Positions 231 through 62,042 of a stretch of 64,000 nt of DNA are shown piece after piece. The translations under genes and the position numbers were made by a program. The notes under the pieces were generated by a model. That model did no database searches, was not told the origin of the DNA, and saw only the letters and a program-made list of their open reading frames with translations. Source of the DNA: Perkinsus chesapeaki ATCC PRA-425 (Eukaryota; Protista; Perkinsozoa); the NCBI GenBank assembly GCA_013115145.1, contig JAAPAO010000044.1:1-64000 (forward strand), written 5' to 3'. Within the stretch, counting starts at the first letter, position 1; each line of letters opens with the position of its first letter.

Positions 231-853
231 CGCCACCTCAAAGTGTACCGCGGACCTTAAATTTAGGGGCACGTACTCTAAACCGCCTGAGCTGGGGAGC
301 TAAACGACCGCTTGACTCTACGATCGTTCAGAGTTCCAGCGAAGTGCGAGCGCGAACCGGCAGATTGCCGCCTTACTCTTCGATGGAAGGGCGTAGGCAT
401 CCCCCCCGTCCAGTAAATCTATACATACTCTCAGCCCGAATGCTTTGACTGGTCATCTTACCCAAAACCGACCTATTCGAGTCACGAAGGGCCCAGGATC
501 TCCACAACGAGTAGCACGCATGCACATCCGCTGCGCACGTGCAATGAGCGGTGCAGTGACTGCACTGCAGTGTCGTAGTGCTGCACCCGAGTCCAGTGTC
601 TGTGAACTGAATCCGAGTGTGACTGTAAGCGTATCTCATCCTTGCTCTATCACAGTCCATGTTGCCATTTCGCGTAGCCTAGGGCTTGTTACATTGGGTA
701 TCTAATGTGCACTGCACATCCAGCTAGATGGCACTGTGCATTGGCACACAAGACAGTTTGTTGAGATATCAGATTCCTCCGAGTCATCAGCACATGCCAT
801 AAAGGGGACATCAATAACTTACTATCGCAATCTCAGATTTTCCCTTCCCTAGG

Positions 854-1877
854 ATGTCTCCATCCCAGAGGCCAAGTCCACAATTCCTATTTGCGTTAGC
901 GTTATTCCTTCTCCCCACAGCGACACTGGGCCTTAGTCGCCGGTCCGCTGTATCAGGCCTTGTACTAGCCTATCTTGTCTACTTCTTGGATGGATCACAA
1001 TATAAACCCTGGTGCAAGTAGGAGCATGACTTGGGATATATTCCATATTCTATTTCGCAGATTCTGGCCTACTTTCTACGAGTTATTCAAGTGGTACCAC
1101 TTTAAGAATATCCGCAGTTTCGCTGGAAAGGTCGAGACAGTATTTGTTGATAAAGATGCCCTAGTCAAGCACGCCAAGATCATCTACTCCATTCACCCTC
1201 ATGGTGTCATGTCAATGTGCCATCCCCACATGTTCTTCACCGTTCCTCACAAAACTTGCAAGCTGGCCGCTTCAGCGTGCTACAAGATCCCTTTAATGAG
1301 AGAAGCTTATCTCTGGTCTGGCATGATCGACGCTGGTCGCCCAACTTGTATGAAAGCTCTCGAGCAAGGTTACAGCCTCACATTGGTCCTCGGAGGAACT
1401 CGCGAACAACTCATATCGTATTCTCCAACTCACGACACAGCCCTCTGTAAATCACGGAAGGGTTTTGTCAAGCTCGCCAGAGACGCCGGTCGAGTGCCCA
1501 TCGTGCCCTGTTACGGTTTCGGCGAATCGATCGCCTACGGTGAGAGCGTTCAGTCATTTCCCGAGAGAACTTCTTTTTCAGAGACAAGCAACTTCCTTCT
1601 ATCATTTCGTCGCTGGTTGCAGCGTCGCTTTGGCATCGGCTGGGCAATAGCTAAATCATGGAGACCGAAACCCGTGAAGGACTTTGCTGTTGTGATAGGC
1701 GCCCCAATCGTATGGGATGACAATGACACAGTGGAGACAATGCACGCGAAGTAGTCTATCGTTGATGTAGGGCTGCGCGCAGGTTCAAGTAGGTACATAG
1801 CTGCCCTTAAAGATTTGTTTTACGATCACCGTGGGCGATACCCTGAGTATGCCGAACGTGAGCTCATCATAAAGTGA
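854..1877 (+). CDS. DGAT2: DGAT2/MGAT-family diacylglycerol acyltransferase, with an apparent 1-nt frameshift near 1000-1010
   Basis: Motifs IHPHG, LVLGGTRE, RKGFVKLA and PIVPCYGFGE in ORF 975-1754. Intron 1751-1792 (GT..AG) adds the terminal exon KYIAALKDLFYDH...IIK* (TGA 1875-1877). The hydrophobic N-terminus from ATG 854 is in a different frame. Confidence 0.85.
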
Positions 1878-2510
1878 GATGAGGTCATTGACGTTCCCTT
1901 CACTTTTGTAGTGTTTCAAGCACTTTCCAGTCTCACCCACGACTGATCCGTCAGCCTTTCCTTGCTGAAGTCCTATTGTACATTTTTTAAAGCTTCATCA
2001 TGAGTAAGAGTGTTGCGTCTATCAGCTATTGATCGTTAGAGTGATTAGGTCTGGCCAATGTGACATTAGTAATGTATATCGGAAAATAGAGAGTAATGCA
2101 AGGACTGTAGAACTATACTTTCGACTAACTCGCCTCGAGTGATGTAACTTCCTCACCCACTTGACTCATTCCTTCACATTTAAATAGAGCCCTCTCACTT
2201 ACGTCAGACTGTAAGTACTCGAAATGATGACGAAGCGAACAATGTGCGATGCTTCAAGCATCAGCAGCATCAAGCATCAGCTTTAAGCAGAGTTATCGTA
2301 TGCATCATGCTCTGAAACCCACTATAAACACGAGACCACCAAAGAAGGGTTGAAAAAGCACTACAAGTGCATGCGTAAAATAGTTGTCAGCTAGGGTTAA
2401 ATCGATCAATACAAAGCAGCTGCAAGCACCTCCTCGATAAAGAACAACTGTGGCATATTAAAGTTGCCACAGTGAAGTGGGGGTGAAAAACTAAGTAGGA
2501 TAGACCATCT

Positions 2511-3616: not shown

Positions 3617-4319
3617 TGTTCTGCAAACATCTCGTGGATGATATCAGAGGACAGCAGTAATGTCGGCTGTACTGCTTGTCCATAAGCAGTATAGCCGACA
3701 TTCACACAGACGAACGCATACCGAGAAAATGGCTCAACAAAGCTTTCCTCTCATCCCCCTTCTTTCGCAAGGGGAATTAGCTATGCACGCATGCACAGTG
3801 GAGCGTACATAATGATTTATTATCGGCTATGTGGTCTTGAAAATCATCGCCGATCTAGTATTGTGTGATACAGGTAGTGCTACAACGGCGGTACTGTTAT
3901 CTGCAACTTTCGTCGAGCAGACTTCTCTGAAGATAATCCACCCACCCCCAAGAGGAGCTCTATCACCAGTGCTACGAATTAAGGGAGCTAACTGGGTTCT
4001 TGCGTGCATGCGTTGATGCCTGCGTGCAGATATACGAATACACGCTCTATGATAGTATACCCTTGTCCTGGGTTCAGCAGCAGCTCCGATGCCGCGAGCT
4101 AGTCATTCTCAGATCACTGGTGAAACACAAGTTGCTAAAGGGAATTGTGAGGATTAGGTATACCGCAACTACTTCGATGCATGGTGAGAGCAGATCGGCT
4201 GGCTCGCACCCCGCGATATTGAAGATATACGATCTGATATTGAGACGCAGAATTGATCTTCCCTTCGCTGTTGTACAGTACGAGTCCCTGTGATGCGGAA
4301 TTCCCACTGAATGGCTGAT

Positions 4320-4576
4320 AGCTATACTCTTTTTGAGCCGTCTTGCTTATGGCTATACTCTTATTGAACCGTCTTGCTTATGGCTATACTCTTATTGAAC
4401 CGTCTTNNNNNNNNNNNNNNNNNNNNNNNNNNNNNNNNNNNNNNNNNNNNNNNNNNNNNNNNNNNNNNNNNNNNNNNNNNNNNNNNNNNNNNNNNNNNNN
4501 NNNNACTCTTATTGAACCGTCTTGCTTATGGCTATACTCTTATTGAGCCGTCTTGCTTATGGCTATACTCTTATTG
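4320..4576. repeat. 31-bp minisatellite (GGCTATACTCTTATTGA[A/G]CCGTCTTGCTTAT) spanning a 98-N gap
   Basis: Units are read directly on both sides of the gap at 4407-4504. True copy number is unknown. Confidence 0.95.
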
Positions 4577-4971
4577 AATTTGGTATAAACTATACCGTAT
4601 AATACCACCAACTCTTGTGCGTTCCTTCACAGCCGTATATGCTGGAAAATGACCGCCCACCGCGTCCTTGACTCTTGCAGTGTTCGAGTGTTTGAATCAC
4701 TTGTCCGGAGATTATTACCCTCTATGAGCAATTGATAAGTGTAGTCGGTGGGTATCGACTATACCGTAGGACTACTGCCCACTGGATTCTACCACCCGGA
4801 CGATGAGGCAAATAATATAATCGCTCTTAAGAGCTACTTCCTCGAGTAGTCTAATTTCCTTAATCCACTACTCCAGAAGGAATGCATTTGATATTTCCTC
4901 TGTCTGAGAACATTTTCACAGCTTAATTGTATCTCCGCATAAGGAACACTTTTCAATCCTCGGGGATCGCA

Positions 4972-10577: not shown

Positions 10578-11167
10578 CTATTGACGAACGCAACTAAACT
10601 TGTCTACTTCGTAAACCTCACCTATTAGTATATTTGGAATCCGTACGAGGACCCCATAGAATGGTTTATATGGATTCCAGTATGAAGTTGCGTCCTCCAC
10701 CTTGAGTAGAGGCTCTACTGTAGAGGTATCCTCGGTGACGGTATCAAGAAGAAGATTCGGGACACACACGGATGGGCTACGTGTAGCAATTTGCTACTCG
10801 CTTTTGCTACTCGCAAAAGTCTTAATCGTTGACTCGTCTTTGAACCAAAGACTTCGGTTATGCCATGGAGCAGTTGTTTGTACTCATCAAGGCCGATTCG
10901 ACCAGAATAGTAAAGTTAGGTGCGAAACACAATAACCTTACACTTCGACGAAGCAAAAAAAACGGAGCGACTTCGTCTTTTTACAGTCGCTCTCAGAGCC
11001 AGTCGCTCCGCGAGCGAGGAGTAGCGCCCTGAGCAAAGTCCGTATCTTGAGGCTGCTTTGAACGGTCCACTCTGAATATTAGGCTTCACGAACACCGTTT
11101 CAACTCCACGGTGTTCAACACTGATGGTAAAGCTGCACGTTACAAGTAGACGCAGTAAGATATCCAA
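10578..11167 (-). CDS. Short spliced hypothetical protein
   Basis: ORFs 10916-11167 and 10578-10769 on the same strand with a hydrophobic N-terminus. No family recognised. Confidence 0.35.
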
Positions 11168-11540
11168 CGAAAATGAATTTCCTTTCGATTATATTCAATT
11201 TTCACTGTAATACTATGATAGTATAAGCTGAAGTCACCAGGATCCATCTAATGGATGCCTTATGCTACACTAACTCACACAGTGTCTGGAATCGAGAAGT
11301 ACACTGGCTTGTCTACACGGCTTATTCAGTGCCTCGTTGAAGGTATGAGTCATTACCGTTCCTGATCCGATGTCTATGTTACCCGATATATAATACTATA
11401 TTATATTATTGATACACATTGTATATCACTTATTCGTCCTCCAAGTATTCACGTAACTTCCGCAACTATGAGCAACTCAAAATGAATGCTTACGAGATGA
11501 AATGAGTTGTATAAACTTCCAGTTTGAGCTACCAAGCAAG

Positions 11541-13096: not shown

Positions 13097-16000
13097 TTAA
13101 TATCGAGGTTTGACAATATCCTGCGTGTTTGGCACTTCAAGTGATTGTCCAACCCATCTGCCGCCAGCTGTCCTTCGTAAACCTTTAAATCCCGATTGTG
13201 TGTCGGTTGGGAAGAGCCAGTGACTGACGTTGGTGTAGTAATGAGGACGTCCTCTAGGCTGCAGCCGAGAACTAAGAATGAGTAGACTTATCAAACATGT
13301 CGATATCAGCATTCTCTTTTGCAAAGATGCATAGAGATAGTATTATCGATGAAAATGCTCTATGAATATAGAGCTAAGTCCTTCTAAATATGCGCTATTT
13401 ACCAACCAGAACTTGGCGATATTCTTGTCAACTCCTCACCTTGTATCCTCTCCTATATCCGGTGCAGCTCCAGTCTTCTTTCGTACCATCAATGGTGGGG
13501 GAATATTAACCTTCTGTGATCGCCAAGTCCACGGCATTATATTCACACGCCAATGGTCGGCACGGTTACGTATCACACCCGAATACTTCTTGAATTTATA
13601 TCTGATCGAAAACAATTGTCTCCCCCAAGTATAACAAAATCGTGCTCTACCCAATACCAAACGATAAGCGTGTATGGACGCAAGTCTTGGAAGGACATTT
13701 GCGGTCCACGCAATTTCGCACCGGTCGACGAGGCACTAGTCGAGAAATTTTCAGAGTGAAGGCTTGCTGTGTCGTCCCAGTGTCAGCTTACGACAGTGAA
13801 TGTTATCATATACTCTCACATGCCGCCTCTTGCCACCGTGTCGCCGCTCAAGAAGATATTTTGCAAACTCCGATCGGCTTCACAAACCCCCCAGATCACC
13901 CTCAAGTGACGACAACATACCCCCGAAGTCATTCCAGCAGCGAATCTCCTACTTGTCCCGTTTCCTGGTTAAATTAAGCTCGTGCATATCATGCATCATT
14001 ATAAGCCTCCTCGTCAGTCTCCCTTGATGGACTGCTGCCGGCTCAACTTGTTTATCCGGGAAAGTACGCTCTGCAACCTGATACGAGCACTGAATTGGTC
14101 CATTTAATAATCCTTTCATTCGCTTAAAGCGGCAACGCTGCAAAGCTGTGCTCCCATGACAGACTATACAGGCGGAAGGAGCTTTCTCATCTACACAGCT
14201 TCCTAATCCAGCGTCACTCGATTGAGGAATGCAAGCAGCCAACGATGCTTTATCGATTCGGCGCCTTGCGGAAAGAGAGGGAGTCATTTATTGATATTCT
14301 ATTCGAGTATTTTTCGCATAGGTTGGTTTAGTGCCCAAGCGCCGCGCATCATCGATTGGCAGACAAAAGCCGAAGCCGGAGTTCCATAAAGATATCTTCC
14401 CAAAATCTTCCGAGTGCGTAACCCTCCTTCCAGTTGAACTGGAACGACATTGCTGATCCCTCAGAACATCATCCAGAGCCAATAAATCACCAAACTGCCC
14501 GACAATAAGATCCATATCATTACCATAAGAAGGCTGTCCCTCATCATATCCACCACACTATCATCAATATCAACAAGAGTTATGTTCTGTAAAGTATAGT
14601 TAGCACCACTTGTTCTATCTCGACACAAAATGGCGTCAAATGCCTCCTCCGCCATAATCATTGTTGGACCTATCAACGTTTCTATTAACCGTTGCATTAT
14701 ATCGTCGCACTGGCAAGAGACTATTTCAAAATAACAGCAGCAACTCCGGTTTCGTCATTTGCCCAAGATGCCAAATAATTCTTTCTTGCCTATCGGAGGC
14801 ACTAATCGGTTATTCATTCTGGAACAGATCGGTGGAGTGAAATATTTCACAGAAACGAAAACAATTGAACCTTTTCCGAGAAATATACATCGACCTTTAA
14901 TAGAGCTTTATGATTGTACAATGATCCAAGAAATACCATGTCCCCAGAGCGAGAAGATACGATAGATACCATTTCATGATGATGCTTCTACTACGGCCCT
15001 ACGGTGACGAAACTTTCATCATCATCACCATCACCCCTATTACCCATTGACCCTTTATGGTCTGCATAACCAAAGATGCCCCTGCCAAGGTGAGGGATAG
15101 CAACCGACCTTATCTCCGCATGCGACGATACGTAGTCCAACGCCGATCGAATAGCATATCTAAACCGTCGCTCAGCATCGGTGCTCGAGCCTTGCCAGAA
15201 ATATGGCATAACCACAAAGAAGACCGCAGCTACATTACTGATACCTGAAAGAAGACAACCTAACCAACCCGACTCGGCAAAATACGAAATATATCAGACC
15301 CAGTTTGAGAGTGAAGAATTTCTGGAATCTCACGACAGAGTCATTCGTAGCGCACAGATACTTGCACTCCCATCAACGTATACAGCCCGACGCAATAAAA
15401 TAGAACATTTCGTATTTTTCGATTTCTCACTCAACATTAATTATATACTGTAAATCAGACAGGACGAGATCGAGACCTTCCAACACCGACGGACGAGTTT
15501 ACGTGGTTTGCTGCAGGCTTCCATGAGGGCATTTCCAGGGCTCATTATTGGTCGAAGGGCAAAGACAGAAATTAAAGGTCCCATCGATACTTCATTTCCC
15601 ATAGTCCACCCAAGTGATGACCGCAATGTCAGACTACAAGCTACTACCATGTGCCGGAGCCGGTATAACAGTGCCAACTGGCAGACCGGAATTGAAGTTA
15701 GCCTTTACTGTTGGTCCGAGATCCGGAGGCTCGATCTGTTCACGAAGGGATTGGTCAGATCGGACAAAGCCGAAGACATCCTTGATTAGATCTCGGCCAC
15801 CTGAAGCAGACCAGCAACTTGCACGAAGATGATTCCCTCAAATGTGTTAACTTCAATCCACATCTTCGTACTTAATCGAATTCATTATTTTTCTAACTTT
15901 GCCGTACTGCATTGTCATTGTGAATTCCTATGATCCTTCGATTAGCTCTCACTTCTCCACCGTCCCACCCAACCCCGTCCGGCTCCATTACTACCCCTCT

Positions 16001-16734
16001 CCAAAGCCTCCAAAGGCAGCCCTCGATAAGGCATGATGTTCGGTGACATCGGCAATATCAGACAATCTCCTTGCCAGTCAAATATACTACCGTGATGGAC
16101 CGTTATGCTGCCAAACTAAAAAACTAAAATAATTGTCCATTGAGATTAGCGTCCGTACCGGTTCCACCGGTACGTTGCAGACAGTTCCTCGATACGTGGG
16201 TTTAATTAGCTCCTCCAAATTCCTAAGGCCTTCGTCGTCCTCCTCCGCCCATTGCTCCGTTCTAGTGTCATCTTGCCGCTGAGTCTTCTGCTTGTGTGGT
16301 GAGGAATAACGAAACTTTGTTTGTATCCGCAGTGACGGGGTTCTGCGGAGGAAAAGTTGGTATGGAATGAGACCGATTCCACCCCCTTCCAGTAGAGCGG
16401 GAGAACAATCCCGATTCGATCCTATTGTGTCCGAATTGAACCATCACGCTCGAATGCAGGTTGTCAAAACTACTACAGCTTAATCTAGAGCCTAAGACAG
16501 CCCGTCCAACTACGAACCCCTGACTTGCCACTATTACTACCTCAATTGTTTGTCAACCATCCATATCTGTTTATCAGCTTCATTAGCAGCTTGCAGCTCC
16601 GTCATCCATTGGTTATGTTGGTGTAATGCTAGATTACGTGCCTTGCTCTTTTGCTTACCAAGCCATGATAGTGATCGGGTCTGCACTAGGATCGACCGAT
16701 GATAGGCGATGCCAGACCCATGATAAGATAGCAT
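13097..16734 (-). CDS. Multi-exon macro-domain (Appr-1-p processing-like) protein with a long C-terminal extension
   Basis: Exons translate to ITVHHGSIFDWQGDCLILPMSPN (about 16030-16100), GLPVGTVIPAPAHG (about 15650-15690) and AIRSALDY..IRSVAIPHLGRGIFGY (15050-15160), matching the macro-fold motif order. Terminal exon ends PRY* at 13097. Confidence 0.72.
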
Positions 16735-16877
16735 TTATTGGCAAGCTGCCGATAATGGAAACCAAAACAACAGCACTCTTCAAATTCGCTCAAGAACAGC
16801 AGCTGGTTTCGTTCCACGTGGTCACGCTGTACTGCTGCGTGAGACTAACACGGAGCGTAGAACATTAACCGAGAAAT

Positions 16878-17906: not shown

Positions 17907-17978
17907 AAAATGGATAAAAACAACAAAGACATTCAGCGCGGATCAACGCGACACATGGAGTGGGAGCCAATAATCATA

Positions 17979-23879: not shown

Positions 23880-23901
23880 CTTTTTGTCAAAAAGTTTTTG
23901 A
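23880..23901. other. Perfect 22-bp hAT-type excision scar (inferred TSD CTTTTTGA)
   Basis: CTTTTTG + TCAAAAAG + TTTTTGA = 8-mer minus last base + reverse complement + 8-mer minus first base. Confidence 0.75.
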
Positions 23902-30317: not shown

Positions 30318-30319
30318 TC

Positions 30320-30340: not shown

Positions 30341-30342
30341 GC

Positions 30343-36885: not shown

Positions 36886-36925
36886 ACATTACTTTCATCT
36901 GTTTGATAATGATAGAGAATTTGTG

Positions 36926-44000: not shown

Positions 44001-46293
44001 TCAACATCACCCTTACCGTATCATCATCATCAATGTCCATCTGATCATCATCAGTTAATACAAGTCCCTTCCCTCTCGTATCCGAGTTCTGTAATGGACA
44101 TTGCCTATCAGCTATCAGCGGCCCCAATGCACATAGAACGTCCGATGGTACACGATGCAGCCCATCCAGTATGAGTAACTAAAGCCCTTCAACTGCCGCT
44201 CTACTAAATCATCATCACCAACTTTCCCTTCTATCGCCGCCCTCACAGCAGCGCTGGGCAACCATACCGATGCACCGCTGGACAGATCGGTAGCTCGACG
44301 CTGAAGGAGGTCTCGGGCGGATATGTCTTGATAGAGAAACAGCGTTTCGGTGTGAGCCGGAGACAAGTTTAAGGTCCGCATGAAATACCTATGAGAACTT
44401 TGTTATAGGAGAGATTAATCGACTTCCTGTTCTCCCAGAGATTCAGATACACTCTAATTTGCTTCAGTGATGTTTTCAAGTTTTGTGCAGCTCTCTCGGA
44501 GGCCCTGTGCGTGCTACGTCAAGTTTTCATAGTTTGGATTGGGCGGATTCGGTTTGGGAGCAAGTGTCCGCGAGACTTCCTACTGCATCGTCCTTGTCTT
44601 TCCACAACCGGAGGGACCGACAATACACACATCGAGACCATTCCGCCAATCGATGGCAAGATTCTCAAGCATAGTCTTCACAGCCGGTGTCGACACAAAA
44701 CCTGTCTCCTGAAGTCATACCGATTTAGTTAGCATTTCGAAACTCAGATCGGACTTTGTCAATTTGTGTAGAGCCTCCTCCTGTTGTAGTACTTTGAGAT
44801 ATACCCAAACTGCTTAGGATAGATTCCACTCCTCTCTTTGGATCCTCGTTTGTAAACAACATCCAAGGATACACCCTGAGCAAGAAAATACATTTCCGTA
44901 GTAGCGAATCTATGTTTATGCATGTTGCTCCGGATCAAACAAAAATTCAAGCCCATCGGACTTTGACTCGGAATTGAGGTGTAGATCAGTGGAAGCTGGA
45001 TTGATTACCAAGGTGTGCAGCTTCAGAGCTGAGCTCACTCATTCTCGCATATCCTCAGTACGCGTAATACCGCAACATTCAACACAAAAGCCCTGAGACT
45101 AGCCTTCTTCCCATGACATGCCCGATGATGATCGGCTTAGCGTTTTCAAATAGTTTATTAACCGTCGCTACCTGGCAATGGCCTGGTGAAGGTCACTCGT
45201 GGCTGAGTAGATCTTTTCGAGGTTGACCACGGCATCACTTGGCATCAAAGGCAGCTCTGACGCCTCACCAATAGCATCCACAAAATCGCGGAGCGATGCG
45301 TTCTCCCCCTAAATATCTGCACTGAGCTTGGATACTTTATTGGTACAAACCTCATTCCCAATTGGTGAACCTCCGACTACTCGACCTTGAAAACGGCTCC
45401 TAAAATGCCATAACGAGTCGCCTGCGCTTCTAATTCATTTCCTTACCGAAGCGGCGGGTCCAAAGTGTGGCCGACACAGGGCGGCACTGGCAGACCGAGA
45501 GCAATAACGATGAAGTTGGGCGAAACTCTTACGAGGTTACGAGAAGCAACCTGTGGGGTGGTACACGCCTTCCAGCAAAATTTCTCGCTGACCTCGGCCT
45601 TGCCTAGGCTCGTGACGAGCCGGTCGTACTTTGTATGATTCAGCAGACATCTGCCATCGTCGAGAACCTTTGAGAAAATTGCTTCCTAATTCACTCCACT
45701 CGATGACCCACCATTTCTCTATTCTCCAATAAGTTGTTAATTGTTGGTAAAACATTTCGTTCAGCCTTTTCTATTCCGTCCAAGATGAGTACCCTTCCCA
45801 TGACAGCAGCCCGAACAACAGCAGAGTCGACGTAAAGAGTCTGCCTGCCAATAGGACCCCCTCCCGTATTTACAATCGCTCACCTGGCCGGACACGCCAA
45901 TCTCTCGCCTTTGTCGGAGGTCGGCCTCAACCGTATCCCGTGTTATCACCAGAAGCTCAGGCTGGAGCCCCTCGGTAACACAGAAATGATACGCCTACAA
46001 ATAATTTTGTGGCGCAGTGAAGATATCCAGCAGCTCGCTAACCAGTCTTCTTCTCGTCGATCCTGGATTCCCTATTAAAAACATATCTTGCCTCAAAGCG
46101 TACTTCTGCCGCATCCACTTCAAATGCCCTTCAAAAACCGTTTCAAAAGTGGCATCTCCCGAGACTATCTGAAAAAGCTCCAAACTCCCAGCAAGAACTC
46201 GCGGCTCACTTTAGGAACGATCCCCCTCCCCAAAGCCGACGGAGGCCGCCTTCCAACATGGGAGGCCACCGAGTTCAATCGCCGCCCTGCCAT
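38079..46293 (-). CDS. VWA8: VWA8 (multi-AAA+ ATPase with C-terminal von Willebrand A domain), many exons
   Basis: HLKWMRQKYALRQDMFLIGNPG, SRDTVEADLRQRREI, LYQDISARDLLQRR, HPNFRIIAIANPP, MQLHRDSTV, VLDEADKAP, NRPGFPFLGNDFF, PHVGGNTYAGGTGGADTAGLGGVGGPYRLDKGH, VLDVSASM, YEIRGHSGDG. ATG 46293 with a transit-peptide-like start; TAA at 38081-38079. Confidence 0.92.
42535..42556. other. Perfect 22-bp hAT-type excision scar (inferred TSD GTCCTAAC) in a VWA8 intron
   Basis: GTCCTAA + GTTAGGAC + TCCTAAC, inside the 445-nt intron 42313-42757. Confidence 0.8.
43773..43846 (+). tRNA. tRNA-Arg(ACG), intronless
   Basis: Cloverleaf: acceptor GCCCGAT/ATCGGGT+A, D stem GTTC/GAAT, anticodon stem TCTGC/GCAGA with loop CT-ACG-GA, T arm GTAGG-TTCGAAT-CCTGC. 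Confidence 0.95.
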
Positions 46294-48751: not shown

Positions 48752-50364
48752 ATGGCCACCAAACCTGTGGCCTCTAAGTAGTCAACTTGCGGAGATTCTA
48801 GAAGATATTTTTGAGGTTAGATTGTCGCTAGATGAGCGAGTCGCCAAATGTATGGCTGTTGCAAATTACGGCGGTGAGATCATCCAAGAGGAAGAGGTTA
48901 GAAAGCTGTTCGGTAAAATATCTTTCCGTTTCAACCTTCTTTACGCATCTTCCTTAGAGGCTAAAGCCAATCCTATCTGCTACGATGGTTTCGAACCAAG
49001 CGGCCGGATGCACATTGCTCAGGGAATTCTCAAGGCCATCAATGTCAACAGGTATCGCTAAGGTTCGCACTCCGACCTCGAAAATATCTTTTAGGTTGAC
49101 CTCTGCCGGCTGCGTATTTGTTTTCTGGGTAGCTGACTGGTTTGGTCTGCTTAACAACAAAATGGGTGGCGATCTTGAAAAGATCAAGAAGGTGAAACGG
49201 AAAGATTCTTCGGAGGTTGATTGGATGCCTCCTGTCAGGTCGGCCAGTATTTTGTTGAAGTGTGGAAGGCCGCAGGTATGGACATGAGTAACGTCCGTTT
49301 CCTTCGGGCCAGCGAGGAAATCAACAAGGTAGCTTATTGGCTCCACCTACTTGACAAAATATAATCTATAGAACCCCCAAGACTACTGGCTACGTGTTAT
49401 GAACATAGCCCGAGCAAACAGCATTTCCAGAGTCAAGCGATGCGGTCAAATTATGGGACGCTCTGAGGGGGATGATCAACCTAGTGCTCAGATTCTGTAA
49501 GATATGATAGTTTTGTGGCGCGTGACGGTTATTTGTAAGGTACCCGTGTATGCAATGCAGCGATATATTCTATCTCCACGCTGATATCTGCCAGCTCGGT
49601 ATGGATCAGAGAAAGGTGAACATGCTAGCCAGAGAGTACATGGATAAGCCAGAGGCTTCTAAGGACAAACAAAGGATGTAGAGGGGGGAGGTCAAGTTGA
49701 CCTTGAAAGAATCTTTGCTGATTTAGGCAAGGCCGAAAGCCTATTATCGTGTCACACGCGATGGTCCCTGGTCTCTTGGAGGGACAGGAGAAGATGTCCA
49801 AGGTAAATTTCGTGGCGCGCGGTCATAAGTTATTTACTTGTTCACTCAGTCTAATCCTGACTCTGCTATTTTCATGGAGGACTCTGAGGCTGATGTTAAG
49901 CGCAAGATCAAGAAGGCCTACTGTCCTCCCAATCAGCTCGAGGGCAATCCTTGTGCCACCTACGTCAAGGTACCACAGGGATTCACCGAGACTCGGTGGT
50001 GAGGGTGGTGGTGTTGTTGTAGATGTTGGTGTTCCCTTATATGGGCAAGTTTGAGGTCCAAAGGAAGGAGGCTAATGGCGGTGATGTGTAAGTGGAGAGC
50101 TACGAGAATATTGGGTTACAAAATCTGACAGAACCTTCAAAACTGTTGAGGAGTTTGAGGAGGCCTACTCTCATGGTCAGCTACATCCTGGCGATCTTAA
50201 GGCAGCTCTTGCCAGGTAAAGGGGATGATGAATGCTTTATGATGATTATACCGCTTATCAGATGCCTTAATGAAATGATTGAACCTGTTCGTCGGCACTT
50301 CGAGACGGATCCCGAGGCTAAGGCATTACTTGCTGAGATTAAAACTTATAAGGTTACCAAGTAG
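48752..50364 (+). CDS. YARS: Tyrosyl-tRNA synthetase, cytosolic (archaeal/plant/alveolate type)
   Basis: CYDGFEPSGRMHIAQG (HIGH-like), FWVADWF, YPCMQCSDIF, CQLGMDQRKVNMLAREY, GLLEGQEKMSK (KMSKS), LHPGDLK. ATG 48752, TAG 50362-50364. Confidence 0.96.
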
Positions 50365-50905
50365 AGAGAGACGCACCAACAACTACTTTACGAAGTTTCT
50401 CGAGTTGATGATTTCAGTCGGTGGTCGAGTAGATCAATTGGAATGGGTGGGTATGGATCCTTAGGGGAGCAGTTGCAGGCGGGAGGGGGTATCCTGGCTA
50501 TATATGATAGTAGATGGCTTCGGAAGTACTTCCGCGTATAGAATGCAAATATGCCTCCTCGGATTGGCGTTTCGGACGAGCGTCAGGGAAAAGAGTAATA
50601 TAGGGTGATGAAATGGTCTCTTCTGGGACCTTGCAGTATGGATATATCTCCTATCAAAACTAGTATTATACCTGTGCGATAGGAACGTTTCTTGAGCCTC
50701 GCTCCTACAGTACCCGCCATCTGAAGACAGTTGAACTTTCAACGGGCCTCATGCATTCAATTTTCAGAGTTTTCACTTGAAGTTTCAAATATAAAGGTTT
50801 TGGGGTATGGTGAGTACATTAGTGGGGTGAATGAAACCGTTTCTAAAACAACGGTAGCTATTGGTAGTTGCTGTTGTTGTTGGTGTCCTCTTATGTCGCC
50901 AACTA

Positions 50906-53622
50906 ATGCCATACGGGAGTAAACTTTATGATGGTCATGATATAGATAGGATACGACGATCCAGTGTCAGCTCGCCGACTAGGGGATATGGTAGTCAATG
51001 GGGCAGTAGTCAAGTGTCAGTGAATCCTATTACAGGGGAAGTAAGGGGAGAGTGTATGGTATCATAATAATAAACCCTTATTAGATTGTCCGGTATGGAG
51101 AAGTGTCCCGTAGTGGCCCACTGAGCAGTCGGATATCATCTCGAGAGGCGCGCAGGGTAGGAAGCTGCGGCAATGGATATGTGGGGTTTTCGTAATAATA
51201 ATTATAAGTTTCCTTTGTTGTACATTACCCGAAGCTTCAGTATTATCGGGGCTATCGAAAAGAATTGAAAAATCGAAGTGGGAAAGTTTTGGGACCAGTT
51301 TACTTGATCAAATCTCGGATATCTGCGTTGGCGTTTTCGTGGGCAATGCCAAATTGGCATTGAGTGCCCTTTATTTATTTTCCTTGCCAGCTTCGGGAGG
51401 ATGAAAAGGCTACATCGAAGGAGCTGTACAGACGGGAGCTTCTCAGCCAAATAGCGGGCGGCAGCAAGCAGGATGCGTATAGGGATCATCCTAGCGGACT
51501 CCGTGCCTCACCGAAGCATCACCTGCCAGGGGCGTTTTTAAAATCCCGTTATGGCGTGCCTGGTGTGAAGGGACCGATGAGGAGGTATTTGGAGCGCTTG
51601 TTGCTGGATGGAGAGGAGGCGGCTGGGCCTGTGCCTCTAGGAAGAACGCCGAGTCGGCGGCGCCGGCGACGGTCTGTTGAAGGGGAGCAGTATTCTCCGG
51701 TGATGGTTGAGGAGCCGATAGTAGCAAGTATTAGGAGTTCTGGGGGAAGGGGCTCACCGAAGAAATGGAATGACAATGCAGATGAAGTCAGAAGGGTGTC
51801 ACCGAGTAGAAGATACGCTGCTGAGCTTGAAGCACAAGTGGCTGAAAAAAAGGAAAGGGAGAGACGGGAGAAGGAAAGAGAGGCAGTGCGGGATAGGATA
51901 TTGGAGGAAAGAATACGGAAGGATGCTGAGTAAGAAGTCAGGTAGTTGGAGTCATTGATAAAGGGCTTTACCCTACGGCGACTTGAGTGTTGAGTATAGA
52001 AAGGTTACTATCCTTCCTATGGGCTTTTTCCAGGAACCTATGTGCTGTGGAATTAAAGTGTGTATACTTCCACGGTAGGAAGTCTTGGCAACTCTAGAAG
52101 AACATATTCCCATGAGGCTGCATGATTTACTTCTATCCCGGCCGCGACCGTAATTGGCTTCTTTGATTCAGGCGTGATGCTTCAGGAGTGTCAAGCGGGA
52201 GGATTGCTGGACGTAGGATTGTTGGCGACCCATTCGAAGGCATTTCCGAGGTAACAGTCGAGCTGGAGCTGCTGCTTTGGTCGAATGGAATTAGTGGCAG
52301 AGCAACGTGGAGCATGTGTTACCTCCCGATACTAGTAGAAGTCGGGCAAGCAGCAAGAGACACCAACAGCGTCGTCATCTTATCGATATCGATGCGGAGT
52401 GGGCCGACTGGTACACCAAGCATCCGGAGATCAACAAGAGGAATGGTACTGAATAGGGAGATGAATTTTGGGGCGCGCGGGGAGATCTACAAGTGATCTC
52501 AGGTGACGGCAAGCCCAAAGAGAAAGTGGATAAGCCCGTCACGGTTGTTCGAGAGGGTGTTCCTCGTAGTGGTAGGAGTGCGGGAGACGAGGTTGTGTAT
52601 ATGAGAAGGGACGATGAAGCACAAACGAAGAGTGGTGTAGAGAACAACTGTAATGTAGCGGAGGACACTATAACGGGGCAGTTGGGGAACCGATGGCAGC
52701 AGAAGTTGCCAACGTTTAGAGAATTGGAAGGGCGGCGAAGCGAGTGGGCGATGGAAAGAGTTTGTGAAGATGATTGTGAGGAATTGGTTATGGATAGATT
52801 GAAGGATGAGATGGATATATTGAAGAAGGACATGGAGGTGTGTCTCGCTGGAAATCTTTCGGTAGTTCTGGAATATCAGGCAGCTAGTGTGATAGTCTTA
52901 TATTTCGGTTCGACTCGAAGAATTTAGAAATCTTTGGGGCCTTCGGTCAGCTTGGGAAATGGTGACGCCGTCACCAACGTACGAAGGGGAGTTCGTTGAG
53001 GGAGGGTCGGTTGTTACCGATCTGAATTGCTGTATTAGCTTACAGGATACGAAGGCCATATTAGGCGTCATTGTCGGGCGGGCCTGTATTGCGAACCTCA
53101 CAGGTGTGGGGAGGTCGACATCTGGCTTTATCGTACCAATACGGGGAGTTCGACTGATTGCCTTGGTATTTTCAGGCCAATCGGCGACGGCTGGATGAAG
53201 AGATATATCGAATAAACTCCTCGAGGCTGCTGCCATGTAGATCAGATCTTATCGAAAGATCCTCGCCGAGATGGTGTGGCATGACTAGGAGCGGTAGAGC
53301 GGATCAACACTCTGGGGAAGGGGAGGAGGAGGAAAGGTCTTTGGACTCGTGGAGTGATGGCGAGACAGTTGTTAATGACCGCGCGCCGTCAAATTGTGGG
53401 TCGAATGTTGGCCTGGAAGATACTATAGTGAGTGAGTCGGCCCCGGCAGATCTGGAGAACTCCCAATTCGAGGAGGTCGATGAAGCTGTCGAGGTCACTG
53501 ATGGGTTTGAAAAGTGGAATGAAGATGTGGGATCAGAGGGCGGAGGGAGGAGGGGTAGCAGGCAGATGAAGGTCCACTCGCCTGCTAAGTACTTTTCGCC
53601 GGACAAGATGGATGTATATTAG
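50906..53622 (+). CDS. Multi-exon charged coiled-coil hypothetical protein
   Basis: Exons such as YRRELLSQI and YAAELEAQVAEKKERERREKERE, plus low-complexity ORFs 52493-52927 and 53158-53622. May be one or two genes. Confidence 0.5.
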
Positions 53623-53759
53623 ATTGGAGCGTCATGTTCAATCATGACCTATGCATTCACGTTGCTTTTACAACTTGTGCTTCATTTGTGTTGGTGTGTT
53701 TTCAAACGGTAAGATTGTCGGATTTATTACACCTCATCAGCTATGTTCGAATGATCGTT

Positions 53760-56215
53760 CGATGTCGTCGGCCGCTGCTCTGTGGGCCGTCAGCATCACA
53801 GCGAGGGTTGGATGCCACTTCGGCTGTGATTCACTCGACAGGTGAGCTCGTGCGGATGTGTTTTGAGGGGGGTGGGGGTGGTATAAATAATGTGTTGGAC
53901 AGTAAATACAGATATAAGGCTCTCGTCGACATAAATTTTCATACTGCTATTTAAGTTGCCTTTATTTCTCGCCAAGTGTATTGCATATGGGACATCATCG
54001 CGGAGAGATGCCGAGATTTGTGGGAGGATCATCACTATCGCAATAGCTTTTTTCAACTTCTCATTCATGGATCTGACACATGCGTGCCGATCGATGTAAC
54101 AATTTCCTAAGAGTCTTTCGAAAATGGGCTGGATAGGTCGGGAAAGCGACATTCATCATGTACAATTTGCTCAAGCGTCGAAGTTGCCGTAATTCAGATG
54201 ATTCTGGCGGCACCTTCTCCACCGCATCTCGGTTTGCTGCCCTGCAACGAGCGTATGCTGACAACCATTCCGAGTGGATATATCAGCTCAACACTCGAAC
54301 ACCATATCATCTTTGGAAAGGACCAGGAGTTATATTTACCCCAACTGGCTTCCAGATGCGACTGCCGAGGTTCCAGGATTGGTAGGCTACGGTTATGCGC
54401 ATGCGTGCGAAAAGATACGCGTAGGTACTTTATGGAGGGTGAGAGTATCTTTGAGAATGGTAAAGAACTTGAAGTGGAAATTTCGGGAACAGGCGACCCG
54501 ACATGGTCTGTGAACAGGAGTAAGGTTTGCATCGCTCCGCTAGAGAGTGTTGCATGTTTTCGGATTTTTAGGTTACAAGGAGCGGTCGAGCGTTAACATC
54601 CTGGCAGCAACTAATGCCAATTCGAGGATGTTTTGGCTTTACATGAGTGCTGCCAAAGCCTTTAATATCGACGTTGGATCATCACAGCTAACACTTCCTA
54701 ATATGCGGCTTATACTGGGGCATCCGAAGACAGCTTTGAGGTCACTTGGGATAGTTGGGGCGCATGAAAAAGTCGGAGATCTCGGTATTGTGTGAGTTTT
54801 TGTGCTGATTGTGAGGTGTGCAGAACTCACAGAACCTGATTGGCACCATATTGCTCACGGAAAGGAATGGTCTTGGAAGCTTCGAGTTGTTGATTTGAGG
54901 GGTTTTGTGGATGATGGTTATTGACTATCTTTCTTAGGCTACTACAACCGGAGCTAGCTCATAAAGTTCGGCGAGTTTATTTTCACCATTTGGATGCTGG
55001 AGCGGTTAGTCGGCACAGGCCTGTAAATATGACATCGACTCTGATGAATACAGTATATGATGTTTTGAGGTGAGGACTCCTCACTGAGCCTCCTGGAGGC
55101 TCCTCACTGAGGAGGCGGGTTATTGATCATTTACGAACCCAGTCTTGGTAATGTTATTTTCGCTAATACCTGGTATCTCCTGGTGAGTGTTTTTCTTCTT
55201 ATTAACCCAAAAGTATATGCTTCATAGAAGCATGCGTTTACACACGGATGGGTAGCAACAGCAGCAGTGCCGAATGTCCCCTAGAACTGAAACGAATGCC
55301 CACTTTGAGCTGCCGCTCGGCCTATTGGTCTCTACAAAGGGAATTGTATGCGTCTGTTGGACATGGCCTATAGTGTGGTTTCATCAGAGCTTAGTGTTTG
55401 AACAACCTGTTTGATGTCGAGGTCTCGGAAGAATCGTGAGAATCATCGCCCTAAATCCAACTTCTAAGCTCTGCCAAACTCGAGCCATGGGGGGTGATAT
55501 GGTATCCTATTTAGGGAAGGCGAGGGTGAGTTCCATGTGGTGACCGATAATGAAGGATTTATGCACAAAATAGTGGCGATAATGCACGAGAAAAGGTCGG
55601 CTAGGGTGGCGGTCTGCCTTGAGGCAAATGACCGAAGGGTTCCTATACCACTCGCTGCTCTGTGCTCTCGGCCAGAGATGCTCTTGTGTCTGAGTTGATG
55701 TAGTCTATTGCACTCTTTTTCCTGTGTTTCAGTGACAAGTTTGAAGCAGGATATGAGTATCCATTTTACGGTGCAACGGAAAAGGACACTCGGAGGCTGC
55801 CGGAGACTTGTGAGTGGATTTTAGGGGACAGTTTGTGTGTAATTCTGTGTAATAGGATTTAGGCATGTACAATGTGTTAATTCTGATCGATAGTTATAGT
55901 GAAATGGTCGATCGATATCAACTGTGTGTATACGGTATACCATTGAACTTTGAGATCTCAAACCACCCTACGGTAACCTGAATAGTATTCGGCCACACAG
56001 TAGAAGTGTCAGGTCCACAATACTTAACGAGAAGTGTTTACTCTGGTGGGTTGCCAGGACTCATGCCCGAGAATGAAAAGCGAGCTCGAACTGAATCTAG
56101 AAGATATCTTCTGGATGCGGAGATAATTATAGACAGAGGCAGCGATAAAGGGAAGGTTAGACTGTGGAAGGATAAGGAGGATGCAGTGGATGTTTATAAA
56201 GGGAATCAAAGGTAG
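53760..56215 (+). CDS. Multi-exon hypothetical protein
   Basis: Protein-like exons separated by 40-70 nt GT..AG introns (e.g. intron 55070-55142 between ...NTVYDVL and SLGNVIFANT). Ends tentative. Confidence 0.45.
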
Positions 56216-57126
56216 TAGAGTTACGGCGGATGATGAACGTGAAATAAATTCCATGAAATATCATTCAGTGAAACCCGAATTTTATTGGAATTCGGCGCCG
56301 GGAGGTTTCGGTGTTATTTTTATCCTTCTGGACGGAATTTTCGGAGATAGGAAATTTTAGTGGTTCTCGAATGTCGATAAAATATTGGTACTCTGACGGG
56401 CCTCACTTTGTTGAGGGTTAGTTGTCAGTTCGAGATGGGGAGACAATTCTTTGTGTTGGGGTGACGCGCCGCCGCTCCATGGGAAACCTGCGTTTGGTCG
56501 TCTGTTGGTCCCGGATGGGGGGCATGCTTGGGTTACTTAGCGGAATGTGAGCGCGGGCAGACCGATTGCGTTGGGCGCTTCACCAGACGGATCCCAAAGT
56601 GTCGCTTTTTTCGTATTTAATTTTTACTGGTGCTGCGCCACTGGCGCAGGTTGTGATTCGCGGGAAGGCGTTCAAGTTGGTATTCTCGCGCGCCAGGAAA
56701 TGTTAAAGTTTCTTAGAGTTGGGATATGGGGTGATAGAAGTCCTGAAATAAGTAGAATTACGACGATGACCTCGGCACTAGAGTTGTGAATTCTTCCGGG
56801 TGCGCAAAGATATGGTTTTAAGGTATCACGCTGTTTGGTTGAAGCGGGTGAATCATTTACCAAATTGGAGATGGACAGGTTGGACCGTTAAGCTAGGCAA
56901 CGAACGTCGACAGTTGTTGGAAGGCAAACAGACCGCGCTTGATCGGAAGCTGGCGAGATTGAGAATTGAGAATGGTCGGGCTGATAAAGCCTAAGACTCA
57001 TGCATGTTTCTTGAGATGGTTTCTGTGGATGATGTGATGCGTTATGATTGTGTTATTATGCTTGATTCATTTGTTAATAGGATTGTCGCCTCCTGTTTTG
57101 GTGCAGTTTATCATCATCTTGTTATT

Positions 57127-60700: not shown

Positions 60701-61894
60701 GTCGAAGAAAGCAGAATGGGCTACCTTATCAAGACAGATTCTTTCCTTTATTTCAGTGATCCGATGATTGTATTCCAAGAGCGGATTGACCTCGACAACA
60801 GTGTCTCCACGGAGCACTTCGAAGGCATGTACTCTACTCTCTGGCCGATCGTAAGTCACTGGTCCTTTCACCGCGGTGGCATTCTACGGTCCTATTGATT
60901 CAGGTTCGTCTGAAGCCACCTCCGCCAGCTCAAGATGCTATTCATTGGCGAGTCGAGATGCGAACTCCGGATGTTCAATTGAGCGATTTTGAAAATGCCG
61001 CGTTTGTTACTGTTACCGCCCTGCTCGCTCGAGCCATTCAAAGACGAGCAACTAGCGCAGATTGCTGTGCCGGTGGGCAGGTAGGAACTGCTTGAGTTGG
61101 TGGGAATGATTTCAAAAGTTTCCAGTCCGAAATTGAAGAAGTCTTAAATCGAATTGGAGTTCTTGTAAAGCGATGTGTTTTCAGGTATCTGAGTTAATTC
61201 CGATTTCACTGTTACTCGATAATATGCGTCGCGCGCACCGAAATGACGCTGTTAGAAAGCAGAAATTCTGGTGGAGTTTCAGAGGGGATATTCAAGAACG
61301 GACCATGGAGGAAATTTGGTAAGTAAAAGTACAACTGCAAATAACAAGGTTCATACCACTTGTTGCTGCTTTCCCCTCGACTCTATCGTATTTCCTATCG
61401 TGTCTCTATTATACTATTTCCCTTTACTATCTCTTCATCGAGCTTTTTCTCGAGGAACATATTTTCGTTCTGAGCTACTGCTACTCGAAAAGCAGTGCAT
61501 TTCCATCTCAGGTGCGTTCCTGGGGGTCTGTTGGACGTTTGCCGTAGCGAGCTGTCCAAGGGCTTCTCGGGCGCCCCCTGTTGTGGTTCGGTCGGTGGCG
61601 GTGATAGCACACGCGCCGCAGCGGCCAACGCTGAACGATTTATAGACTTTTTGGAAGCAAGAATAAAGGGAAAGGTGGGAACGCGTTTCGTCACGCGCCG
61701 CGAAATTATTTTTTCAGGTCATCACTGGTGCCCAGTTTTTGAGGAACAGATTGTTTGTGTCCAAGAATTATCATGACGATTCTGTCATCGGGCCCGAGGC
61801 TGCGAGAGAGATAATGGAGCTCTGTGTGAAGATGGGCAACACTGAAACAGTCGAAGAGCTCCGACGCATCGCACCAGAAATGTTTGTATATTAA
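57127..61894 (+). CDS. GCLC: Glutamate-cysteine ligase catalytic subunit (gamma-glutamylcysteine synthetase)
   Basis: MGFLDAYTP start, LKWGDE|MEYML, WRPEYASYMVEA, IYMDATVFGFGQSCLQ|ATFEA, VRLKPPP...WRVEMRTPDVQLSDFENAAF. TAA 61892-61894. Confidence 0.95.
57661..57720. repeat. (ACT)20 microsatellite inside a GCLC intron
   Basis: Perfect 60-bp trinucleotide run. Confidence 0.98.
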
Positions 61895-62042
61895 CTTGAG
61901 TGTCGATCTGTACATAATAACACTACCCCCATCTTTTCCCTCATCAGTGAGAACTATATTACTCCCGCTTTTACTGCTAAAGCTGATGATGCCAGTAGAC
62001 TACTGGCAGTAATACTGGTATCATCACTGGTCTAGTCCCCGT

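Follow-up and report, generated by a model that had tools for sequence, protein, structure and literature searches.

A stereotyped 22-bp scar in Perkinsus chesapeaki DNA, probably the footprint of an excising cut-and-paste transposon with 8-bp target duplications

The hAT element Hermes reportedly forms a hairpin on the flanking DNA, its first nick lying one base into the flank, a result credited to Zhou et al. 2004. Ac/Ds footprints from plants, S. cerevisiae and C. albicans contain palindromic P nucleotides in which the central base is the complement of the nucleotide adjoining the element; both copies of the 8-bp duplication are affected, arms in yeast can be as long as 20 nt, and microhomology takes part in the joining (PMC5873905). 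Hermes makes 8-bp duplications as well, with a preference for nTnnnnAn (PMC10368747). For Muta1, a flank hairpin of 43+43 nt has been demonstrated, the duplications are of 8-10 bp (usually 9), and more than 90% of the excisions in yeast are precise (PMC5499845). In rice, comparative genomics shows the excision scars of DNA transposons as a class of indels (PMC4423477). We found no published description of scars such as those reported here; our literature search also returned no report of hAT in Perkinsus and nothing relevant on Perkinsus footprints or end-joining genes.

The sequence studied here is the first 64 kb of contig JAAPAO010000044 of Perkinsus chesapeaki, a parasite of clams, and this whole stretch of 64,000 nucleotides is what we call the window. 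An initial annotation had pointed to eleven places at which an 8-base site X has become the site, the inverted site and the site again, following the formula X1-7 + revcomp(X1-8) + X2-8. All eleven are as it described them (23880, 28416, 35723 and 42535 perfect; 551, 27118 and 61992 with one mismatch), and six further perfect sites, at 31008, 35786, 36358, 36409, 36559 and 36763, had been missed. Our analysis confirms that the 22-bp pattern is real and stronger than first described. With majority-rule scoring, the window holds 10, 6, 11 and 13 sites at 0, 1, 2 and 3 mismatches, against 0, 0, 0.6 and 6.8 in shuffles scored the same way, and beyond the sites with 0-2 mismatches there are four further copies with extra internal letters. 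Decay is graded over the 10, 6 and 11 scars at 0, 1 and 2 mismatches, and the sequence of X is different at every site. The density in the window is about 1 per 2.4 kb with this scoring, so that the first estimate of more than one per 6 kb was too low; in intergenic DNA of Perkinsus, more than one scar per kb is reached. The perfect and one-mismatch scars, and nine of those with two mismatches, are given below.

23880-23901, perfect scar, X=CTTTTTGA, intergenic
28416-28437, perfect scar, X=TTTCTCTT, intergenic
31008-31029, perfect scar, X=CGAGCGAC, within the gag of an LTR retroelement, taking gag from frame 0 to frame 2
35723-35744, perfect scar, X=ACTGTTAC
35786-35807, perfect scar, X=GGGGAGAC
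36358-36379, perfect scar, X=GGTCCGCT
36409-36430, perfect scar, X=AAAATAGC
36559-36580, perfect scar, X=GACATGAT
36763-36784, perfect scar, X=ATCCAAGG
42535-42556, perfect scar, X=GTCCTAAC, in an intron-like part of the AAA_5 gene
551-572, one-mismatch scar, X=GTGCAGTC
4582-4603, one-mismatch scar, X=GGTATAAT, directly after a 31-bp tandem array
10705-10726, one-mismatch scar, X=AGTAGAGC, intergenic
27118-27139, one-mismatch scar, X=CCTGTATA, intergenic
30049-30070, one-mismatch scar, X=CATGCATC, just upstream of the 5' LTR
61992-62013, one-mismatch scar, X=CCAGTAGT
2055-2076, decayed scar, two mismatches, one of the 11 such sites set against 0.6 in shuffles
10837-10858, decayed scar, two mismatches
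11203-11224, decayed scar, two mismatches
37180-37201, decayed scar, two mismatches
37843-37864, decayed scar, two mismatches
45607-45628, decayed scar, two mismatches
51339-51360, decayed scar, two mismatches
51646-51667, decayed scar, two mismatches
56627-56648, decayed scar, two mismatches

The excess belongs to a single geometry. When the form X1..X(L-1)+rc(X1..XL)+X2..XL was scanned for L=4-12, only L=8 stood out, with 10 exact copies in the window against 0 in 20 order-2 Markov shuffles, and the same scan gave zero exact copies at L=7 and at L=9-12. Over a grid of middle lengths 5-12 and offsets 0-3, an excess was found only at middle 8 with offset 1, all other geometries, offsets 0, 2 and 3 included, being at chance level. 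Counted with minimal constraints, a spacer of 8 occurs 38 times against 2.5 expected; spacers of 2-7 under the same constraints are at chance level, and the short footprints typical of hAT elsewhere show no excess, a point against the hAT-type explanation given below. A target-duplication length of 8 is the only one enriched in the L scan, the grid and the spacer test, and the specificity for length 8 and offset 1, over other lengths and over shuffles, is what had been predicted from the first sites. Plain tandem 8-mer duplications show no excess.

The positions of the scars relative to genes involve three larger features.

30129-34803, plus strand, LTR retroelement, its 189-bp LTRs sharing 99.5% identity
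34804-38078, intergenic spacer of 3.3 kb in which scars number at least 11 and isolated odd palindromes at least 8
38079 to beyond 44522, minus strand, AAA_5 gene

Within the stretch 7979-44522, 17 of 19 scars are intergenic, though intergenic DNA makes up 28% of it. A restriction to introns and intergenic DNA had been proposed, and it holds for host genes, but the scar at 31008 lies within the CDS of the retroelement gag. The gag of P. marinus aligns upstream of this scar in frame 0 and downstream in frame 2, and taking out 14 bp at the scar rejoins the two frames. Since the LTRs are 99.5% identical, this scar is dated as recent. The annotated gag-pol protein is translated across it in the wrong frame. 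We found no paralogous copies of the LTR element of the window; its nearest relative, in P. marinus, is 73% identical, and the P. marinus copies are 100% identical and free of scars. The scar at 30049, just outside the element, adjoins an odd palindrome with arms of 9 at 30037. In the spacer at 34804-38078 the local density of at least 11 scars is very high, which we count against the explanation that we favor below. The possibility that this spacer is a decayed transposase gene was rejected, as removing the scars restores no ORF.

The scars are shown to be derived 14-bp insertions and are found across the genus. Five scars of P. olseni (L002 at 10462, 18134 and 18421; L015 at 565 and 19736) align with exact gaps of 14 bp in a second haplotype. 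This haplotype is about 93% identical to the scarred one and carries at these places the single 8-mer rather than the 22-mer, as expected of empty sites in the initial annotation. Of the 23 indels of at least 8 bp between L002 and L008, 6 measure 14 bp, the modal length. Haplotypes differ by about 1 scar per 200-400 point differences, a ratio that fits low and long-lasting activity, and the "very active" hAT family first envisaged is not required. Scars occur in three species, P. chesapeaki, P. olseni and P. marinus, in Illumina and (for P. marinus) Sanger assemblies, and are identical in L002 and L003, which are independent isolates. Proteins of P. chesapeaki and P. olseni are only 60% identical, and non-coding DNA is therefore unalignable between these two species.

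It could be argued that the 22-mers are an artefact of assembly, library preparation or sequencing, given a draft assembly in which gaps are present. The window contains two.

4407-4504, assembly gap within a 31-bp tandem array, outside all scars
62080-62177, second assembly gap, within a 36/39-bp tandem array, outside all scars

The 31-bp array continues on either side of the first gap (4314-4406 and 4505-4578, with one common unit); at both gaps the two flanks come from the same array, and the gaps hide copy number alone. The scars nearest to them, at 4582 and 61992, are not in contact with a gap, nor is any other. The presence of scars in the Sanger assembly of P. marinus and in P. olseni speaks against an assembly artefact, and such an origin is further contradicted by the occurrence in three species, the identical scars of L002 and L003, the graded decay, the frameshift in a real ORF and the polymorphism between haplotypes; we consider it exceedingly improbable. 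Next to no weight can be given to the view that selection keeps the palindromes for a function, for instance as hairpin signals. Their concentration in intergenic DNA would suit such motifs, but their sequence differs from site to site, and the scars are polymorphic and decaying, with one of them breaking an ORF.

In our judgment, the 22-mers are probably excision footprints of a cut-and-paste element that makes 8-bp duplications and leaves flank hairpins offset by one base, a hAT-type element being the most likely agent. What we infer is how the hairpins form, that repair proceeds by annealing and, from geometry alone, which superfamily is involved. A transposon would insert at an 8-bp site X, duplicate it and later excise, the transposase nicking one base into the flank at each end. 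The freed 3'-OH would attack the opposite strand and seal the flank as a hairpin, the tip of which would be the complement of the element-adjacent base. Host nucleases may then cut the hairpins 3' of the tip, leaving 3' overhangs with inverted copies of the duplicated site. Because both flanks end in the same 8-mer, the two overhangs would be complementary in register, and their annealing and fill-in would yield X1-7 + revcomp(X) + X2-8, so that the site ends up 14 bp longer; the 22-mer would always be produced once both overhangs together reach at least 9 bases. In-register annealing of opened hairpins would account for the stereotypy of the scars. Where annealing fails, both palindromes would be expected to stay side by side, with or without filler. 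The annealing step, which explains the stereotypy, and the isolated odd palindromes described below were absent from the initial annotation. To our knowledge, only hAT elements combine an 8-bp duplication with a hairpin offset by one base, and a hAT-type element is therefore the most likely agent. The target preference has the same direction as in hAT, and it is weak: T at X2 or A at X7 is found in 36 of 92 cases (39%, against a background of 26%; p=0.003), and both are present in only 6 of 46 sites. To that extent the sites lean toward the nTnnnnAn preference of Ac-type elements that had been suggested.

Four compound sites bear on how the breaks are repaired.

37246-37305, compound footprint with two alternative readings
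37462-37485, canonical scar lengthened by 2 letters, a TC added at the first apex, X=TGTAGCCA
37674-37705, canonical scar with two extra GATAT units, X=TTCATATC
55070-55114, canonical scar lengthened internally by 23 letters, a third odd palindrome among them, X=GTGAGGAG

Each of them is a canonical skeleton with extra letters; alternatively, compound sites can be taken as two un-annealed odd palindromes, the outer arms of which rebuild one 8-mer. At the first, the canonical reading covers 37246-37281, with X=GTCGCAGA, a 12-nt filler and 2 nt, and the other covers 37252-37305, where two long odd palindromes (arms of 13 and 9) rebuild X=GTCTAGAG. The compound sites that had been recorded at 37252, 37462, 37674 and 55070 are present, but they are not simple nested events: nested canonical events were rejected after iterative 22-to-8 collapse and forward simulation with 2-3 events failed to reproduce them. 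Filler copied from nearby is present in some of these sites.

Odd palindromes, those with a single base at the centre, show an enrichment of their own (33 against 2.9 at arm 7; 12 against 0.8 at arm 8), which even palindromes in the same count do not. No duplicated-site partner adjoins 42 of the 46 isolated odd palindromes, and the excision model explains these only loosely. A|T stands beside the centre in 22 of 46, the same as the target bias of the scars, and their outer edges carry no motif, which gives no sign of cryptic transposon ends. A polymorphic 26-bp insertion at L014 14379, where X is single in two other haplotypes, is made up, in order, of X1-7, the left palindrome (12 nt), one further nucleotide, the right palindrome (7 nt) and X2-8. 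Seven un-annealed two-palindrome footprints were found, against 0 in shuffles, and in this variant both palindrome centres are complements. The full inverted duplication (+14 bp) accounts for about 80% of recognisable footprints. An origin with no transposon, whether by template switching during replication, by fold-back synthesis or by templated repair of random breaks in the manner of polymerase theta, could draw on the copied filler of the compound sites and on alternative end joining, which yields templated inverted insertions. Such processes, however, give no reason for a lock to exactly 8 bases with a one-base offset; they need microhomology, which random 8-mers do not offer, and they predict no T2/A7 bias. 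We hold this origin to be very unlikely.

The search for the element itself covered the window and about 230 kb of other Perkinsus loci (about 290 kb), in which there is no convincing copy of a TIR element with an 8-bp duplication; this sample is less than 1% of a genome, so the absence is weak evidence and rare elements are possible. No hAT transposase domain, whether the RNase-H-like DDE core, the C-terminal dimerisation domain or the BED finger that often goes with them, was found with Pfam among about 40 ORFs of the window and other loci, which contain retroelement and host domains only, nor in the Pfam annotation of all called genes at 15 loci. Scans for filled sites (an 8-bp repeat with a TIR of 6-10 bases) gave matches at chance level only, and five haplotype alignments contain no filled allele, that is, no insertion of at least 25 bp with an 8-bp duplication. 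One weak candidate copy in P. marinus, L005 18835-22666, looks like chance. The hAT reading of the initial annotation is strongly supported as regards excision with an 8-bp duplication and a one-base hairpin, but these approximately 290 kb provide no hAT transposase, TIR or filled allele.

With hAT itself not found in that sample, the same mechanism might be operated by another superfamily with 8-bp duplications, namely Merlin/IS1595-like, Zisupton, Novosib, P or an 8-bp MULE, which we regard as unlikely. Footprints of P elements retain TIR remnants, which the variable middle of the scar rules out. We know of no documented flank hairpins for Merlin, Zisupton or Novosib, and of no documented one-base offset for Merlin. 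P. marinus does have two Merlin-like transposase ORFs, which are conserved and lack recognisable TIRs and duplications, and the 8-9-bp duplications of Merlin are compatible with the length of 8 (PMC8101967). MULEs also form a flank hairpin (PMC5499845), but we read the 43+43-nt hairpin of Muta1 as having no offset, and the no-offset geometries (24-mer, 27-mer) are absent from the window, where a MULE-type footprint (middle 8-11, offset 0) has zero matches and a Transib/RAG-type footprint (middle 5, offset 0) has 0 against 0.1 in shuffles. Both the offset of one base and the T2/A7 bias are characteristic of hAT (PMC5873905, PMC10368747).

The many scars and the lack of elements in about 290 kb would also suit a domesticated hAT-like host nuclease or an extinct element, with no conventional resident transposon family. 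The yeast Kat1 is a domesticated hairpin-forming hAT transposase (cited in PMC10368747), and the P. marinus transposase ORFs are conserved without TIRs (PMC8101967). However, a scar requires X on each flank and hence a prior insertion with target duplication, for which an element-free cut at one 8-mer is insufficient, and perfect and polymorphic scars argue for ongoing events as opposed to an extinct agent; such a source appears decidedly improbable. A more speculative proposal, to which we give a small chance, is that hairpinned breaks in Perkinsus are repaired almost only by in-register annealing, and that a rare or host-retained hAT-like transposase, possibly domesticated, writes +14-bp mutations genome-wide. 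If so, classical end joining or tip-proximal hairpin opening, for example, could be missing; these +14-bp mutations would accumulate like a clock and identify themselves, would be more frequent than any other class of long indel, and would steadily add to the intergenic DNA of the genus.

If the scars are excision footprints, as we favor, they would form a self-annotating record that gives the exact former site, the target sequence and, from decay, a rough age, and the element need not be seen. Perkinsus species are parasites of oysters and clams, and the scars, as the modal long indel between haplotypes, are usable as strain or haplotype markers. They are also a source of annotation errors, as in the wrong frame of gag-pol. 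That repair gives nearly the same product each time indicates an unusual balance between break-repair pathways in the Perkinsus lineage, which is relevant to genome editing in P. marinus and to myzozoan genome evolution. A simple back-reference pattern can reveal hairpin-type transposon activity in any genome.

Compared with known systems, the V(D)J coding joints of RAG and Transib share hairpinned coding or flank ends that are opened off-centre to give palindromic additions, but they have neither a one-base offset nor an 8-bp duplication, and their geometries are absent in the window. Muta1 and other MULEs share the hairpin and a long duplication, while the 24-mer and 27-mer that they predict are unseen in the window. 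Hermes differs in that the target bias is weaker in Perkinsus, whose sampled DNA yielded neither a Hermes-like protein nor a TIR. Rice has abundant elements, few hAT events and footprints of diverse kinds, with deletions and filler, whereas in Perkinsus one stereotyped scar is dominant and the elements are unseen. The likeness to Ac/Ds lies in palindromes on both 8-bp copies, with a central base that is the complement of the one beside the element. Ac/Ds footprints are, however, heterogeneous and mostly short, in contrast to the one +14-bp product that makes up about 80% in Perkinsus with short ones unenriched, and they have been seen at reporter loci, whereas the Perkinsus scars are a genome-wide class, both fixed and polymorphic.

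Perkinsus chesapeaki is a perkinsozoan alveolate that parasitises clams (PMC11513098), and its contig JAAPAO010000044.1 (GCA_013115145.1) is 107,349 bp long, with window coordinates identical to contig coordinates. We confirm the 22-base scar, in which bases 1–7 of an 8-base site X are followed by the reverse complement of X and then by bases 2–8, for a net gain of 14 bp. A scan of the window with the pattern X1..X(L-1) + revcomp(X1..XL) + X2..XL, for L from 4 to 12, gave 10 exact scars at L = 8, compared with 0 in 20 order-2 Markov shuffles, and zero exact matches at L = 6, 7, and 9–12. On a grid of middle lengths 5–12 and offsets 0–3, the sole enriched cell was middle 8 with offset 1. The structure is present at every place where the initial annotation reported it, but six perfect sites were absent from that list:

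31008, 35786, 36358, 36409, 36559, 36763: additional perfect scars

When each 22-mer is scored by the minimum number of changes required to fit the pattern, the window holds 10, 6, 11, and 13 sites at 0, 1, 2, and 3 changes (0, 0, 0.6, and 6.8 in shuffles), a graded decay with about 27 recognisable scars in the 64 kb. A relaxed test, requiring only a 6-base direct repeat and two complementary junction bases with spacers of 0–24, was applied to the window and nine other loci; spacer 8 alone was in excess (38 vs 2.5 expected), and the short footprints usual for hAT elements (spacers 2–7) stood at chance level in these 10 sequences. Neither of the two N runs in the window is touched by a scar. 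Since each gap is enclosed by a single array, only the copy number of the array is missing, and the gap sizes given in the assembly are nominal for both:

4314–4578: array with a 31-bp unit, which flanks gap 4407–4504 on both sides (blocks 4314–4406 and 4505–4578)
62042–62398: array with 36/39-bp units, containing gap 62080–62177

Comparison of P. olseni assemblies, in which haplotypes of the same loci are 91–97% identical, shows that the scars are the derived state, with 14 bp inserted at a single 8-mer. Five scars are exact 14-bp gaps in the other haplotype, which keeps a single X:

L002 10462: polymorphic scar, X = CTCGCAAG
L002 18134: polymorphic scar, X = CTCGACGG
L002 18421: polymorphic scar, X = GAACTGGA
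L015 565: polymorphic scar, X = GTCCCCAC
L015 19736: polymorphic scar, X = GTCCAACC

Older, decayed scars are common to both haplotypes. Between the P. olseni loci L002 and L008, 14 bp is the commonest long indel (6 of 23 indels of at least 8 bp). New scars between haplotype pairs arise at roughly one per 200–400 point differences, so the “very active” family envisaged initially is unnecessary; few elements, rare excision, and a long time would suffice. Two other P. olseni insertions are of separate kinds. A 240-bp insertion at 15192–15431 of L013 (JABAHT010000015), with long poly-G/poly-C runs around a 10-N gap, is missing from other haplotypes and is probably an assembly artefact. A 281-bp insertion (L013 5800 / L014 2778), carried by two haplotypes and missing in a third, is flanked by a 5-bp duplication, AATAT, and may be a solo LTR or some other element.

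Scars of identical structure are present at P. olseni loci, where identical ones are common to assemblies of two isolates. They also occur in P. marinus ATCC 50983, where 126 kb of the Sanger assembly contains 11 perfect scars and another 6 with one mismatch. They are thus genus-wide, and assembly artefact is ruled out. In P. marinus GG685288 (L005), a degenerate retroelement-like region at 13428–18200, with a DUF7047 ORF at 14442–14882, carries six scars in 1 kb (15195–16221) and a 20-arm palindrome at 13643; this dead coding DNA is a second hot spot for scars. The gene-dense 22-kb P. marinus loci L011 (GG680342) and L012 (GG676416) have no scars at two or fewer mismatches; being syntenic and 94–97% identical, these two scaffolds of one assembly are either haplotigs or the outcome of a recent duplication. 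One copy of an interspersed repeat carries a 256-bp insertion (L005 21206–21461 vs L007 2723–2741) between imperfect direct repeats of some 15 bp, and part of the insert recurs at L005 7691–7775; this small segment, mobile or duplicated, is unclassified and other than the 8-bp-duplication type.

Within 7979–44522, for which gene calls were available, 17 of 19 scars are intergenic, although intergenic DNA makes up 28% of that stretch. The 3.3-kb spacer 34804–38078 holds at least 11, and deleting them recovered no ORF; a degenerate tandem repeat (36910–37089, unit about 38–43 bp, copies 81% identical) lies inside this spacer. One of the remaining two, at 42535, falls in an ORF-poor, intron-like section of an AAA_5 gene, and the other interrupts a retroelement gag:

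30129–34803: LTR retroelement, LTRs of 189 bp and 99.5% identical, scar 31008 in gag

P. marinus gag residues 1–212 match frame 0 as far as the scar (70% identity), and residues 224–267, comprising the C-terminus with the second CCHC knuckle, match frame 2 past it (75%); deleting 14 bases fuses the two frames. The deposited product P0005 (1375 aa) continues in the wrong frame beyond the scar, without the true gag C-terminus and its second zinc knuckle. The element is young and apparently single-copy among the sequences compared. A 4.6-kb P. marinus LTR retroelement occurs as four copies at unrelated loci (L004–L007, 8817–13446), none with scars; their 100% identity suggests very recent amplification.

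The 22-mer resolves into two overlapping 15-base palindromes centred on the complements of X8 and X1, as expected if an X-flanked element leaves via flank hairpins formed one base in. Ac/Ds footprints likewise involve hairpins one base into the flank (PMC5873905). An element between two X copies would excise, each flank being closed as such a hairpin. Opening 3' of the tip would leave overhangs that end in revcomp(X) on the top strand and in X on the bottom strand; these overhangs would pair perfectly and in register, and fill-in would give X1–7, revcomp(X), X2–8 on the top strand. Any pair of openings with combined overhangs of at least 9 bases would yield the identical product, which would explain the stereotypy of the scars. 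Failed annealing would leave both palindromes, predicting a second footprint class.

This class exists. At L014 14379, a 26-bp insertion at X = GCGAGCGG (single in two other haplotypes) reads X1–7, a 12-base left palindrome that continues into the flank on that side, a single additional base, a right palindrome of 7 bases, and X2–8. A general scan for pairs of odd palindromes with outer arms that together restore one 8-mer found 26 canonical pairs, plus 7 in which the centres lie 17–39 apart; shuffles gave none. The two-palindrome cases explain the long perfect palindromes seen in P. marinus, with arms of 15 and 20, as well as three of the four compound sites (37252, 37462, 37674, 55070). The compound sites are real structures, but nesting of canonical events was tested and not borne out: all four are a canonical skeleton plus extra letters or filler, one filler piece being a copy of sequence 39 bases off.

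Odd palindromes with a one-base centre are also abundant in the window (33, 12, and 6 with arms of 7, 8, and 9, vs 2.9, 0.8, and 0.2 expected), and isolated ones have arms of 7–13. Perfect examples, among further ones, are:

705, 2248, 3551, 10783, 11632, 14428, 30037, 36587, 37601, 37938, 37977, 38836, 41997, 49689, 49984, 52960

That at 11632 is an in-frame 21-mer within a called CDS, and that at 37977 has an 18-base arm if one mismatch is allowed. Among the 46 palindromes outside scars in all sequences, only 4 adjoin a duplicated-site remnant. A|T stands beside the centre in 22 of the 46, a feature that links these palindromes to the hairpin ends behind the scars; they are perhaps one-sided footprints whose other X copy was resected. 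Those in aligned haplotype regions are present in all haplotypes compared.

An 8-bp duplication and a one-base offset together are hAT properties. The no-offset geometries of RAG/Transib (5 bp) and MULEs (8–11 bp) were absent from the window grid scan, and the hairpin of the MULE Muta1 is 43+43 nt (PMC5499845). Across 46 distinct scars, T2 or A7 occurs in 36 of 92 cases (26% background, p = 0.003) and pyrimidines are favoured at position 3 of X; the T2/A7 bias is alike in direction to the nTnnnnAn preference of Hermes (PMC10368747), but weak. Weighing against hAT membership is the missing element: hAT, MULE, and Merlin domains were found in none of about 40 ORFs or the called genes of 15 loci, about 290 kb of Perkinsus DNA held no convincing TIR element with an 8-bp duplication, and indels of at least 25 bp in five haplotype alignments included no filled allele. 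We found no published report of hAT in Perkinsus. The main rival is the Merlin family, whose duplications are 8–9 bp long; P. marinus retains two Merlin-like transposase ORFs, both lacking TIRs (PMC8101967). Separately, a 7.3-kb segment (48788–56124), overlapping strong positive GC skew at 50–58 kb, has a perfect 9-bp direct repeat, TGCGGAGAT, at both ends and inverted termini matching at 11 of 12 positions; its ORFs have no Pfam match, and its boundary repeats may be chance, the right terminus itself being a near-palindrome. We regard the excision-footprint reading as strongly supported and the hAT assignment as probable but unproven.

At reporter loci, palindromic footprints of hAT elements are textbook knowledge (PMC5873905, PMC3499496), and rice has been surveyed for footprints across its genome (PMC4423477). 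We found no prior description in the literature of one dominant stereotyped +14-bp product, fixed and polymorphic genus-wide. Known hAT footprints are mostly short and varied, whereas in Perkinsus one uniform product prevails, at a density above one per kb in intergenic DNA.
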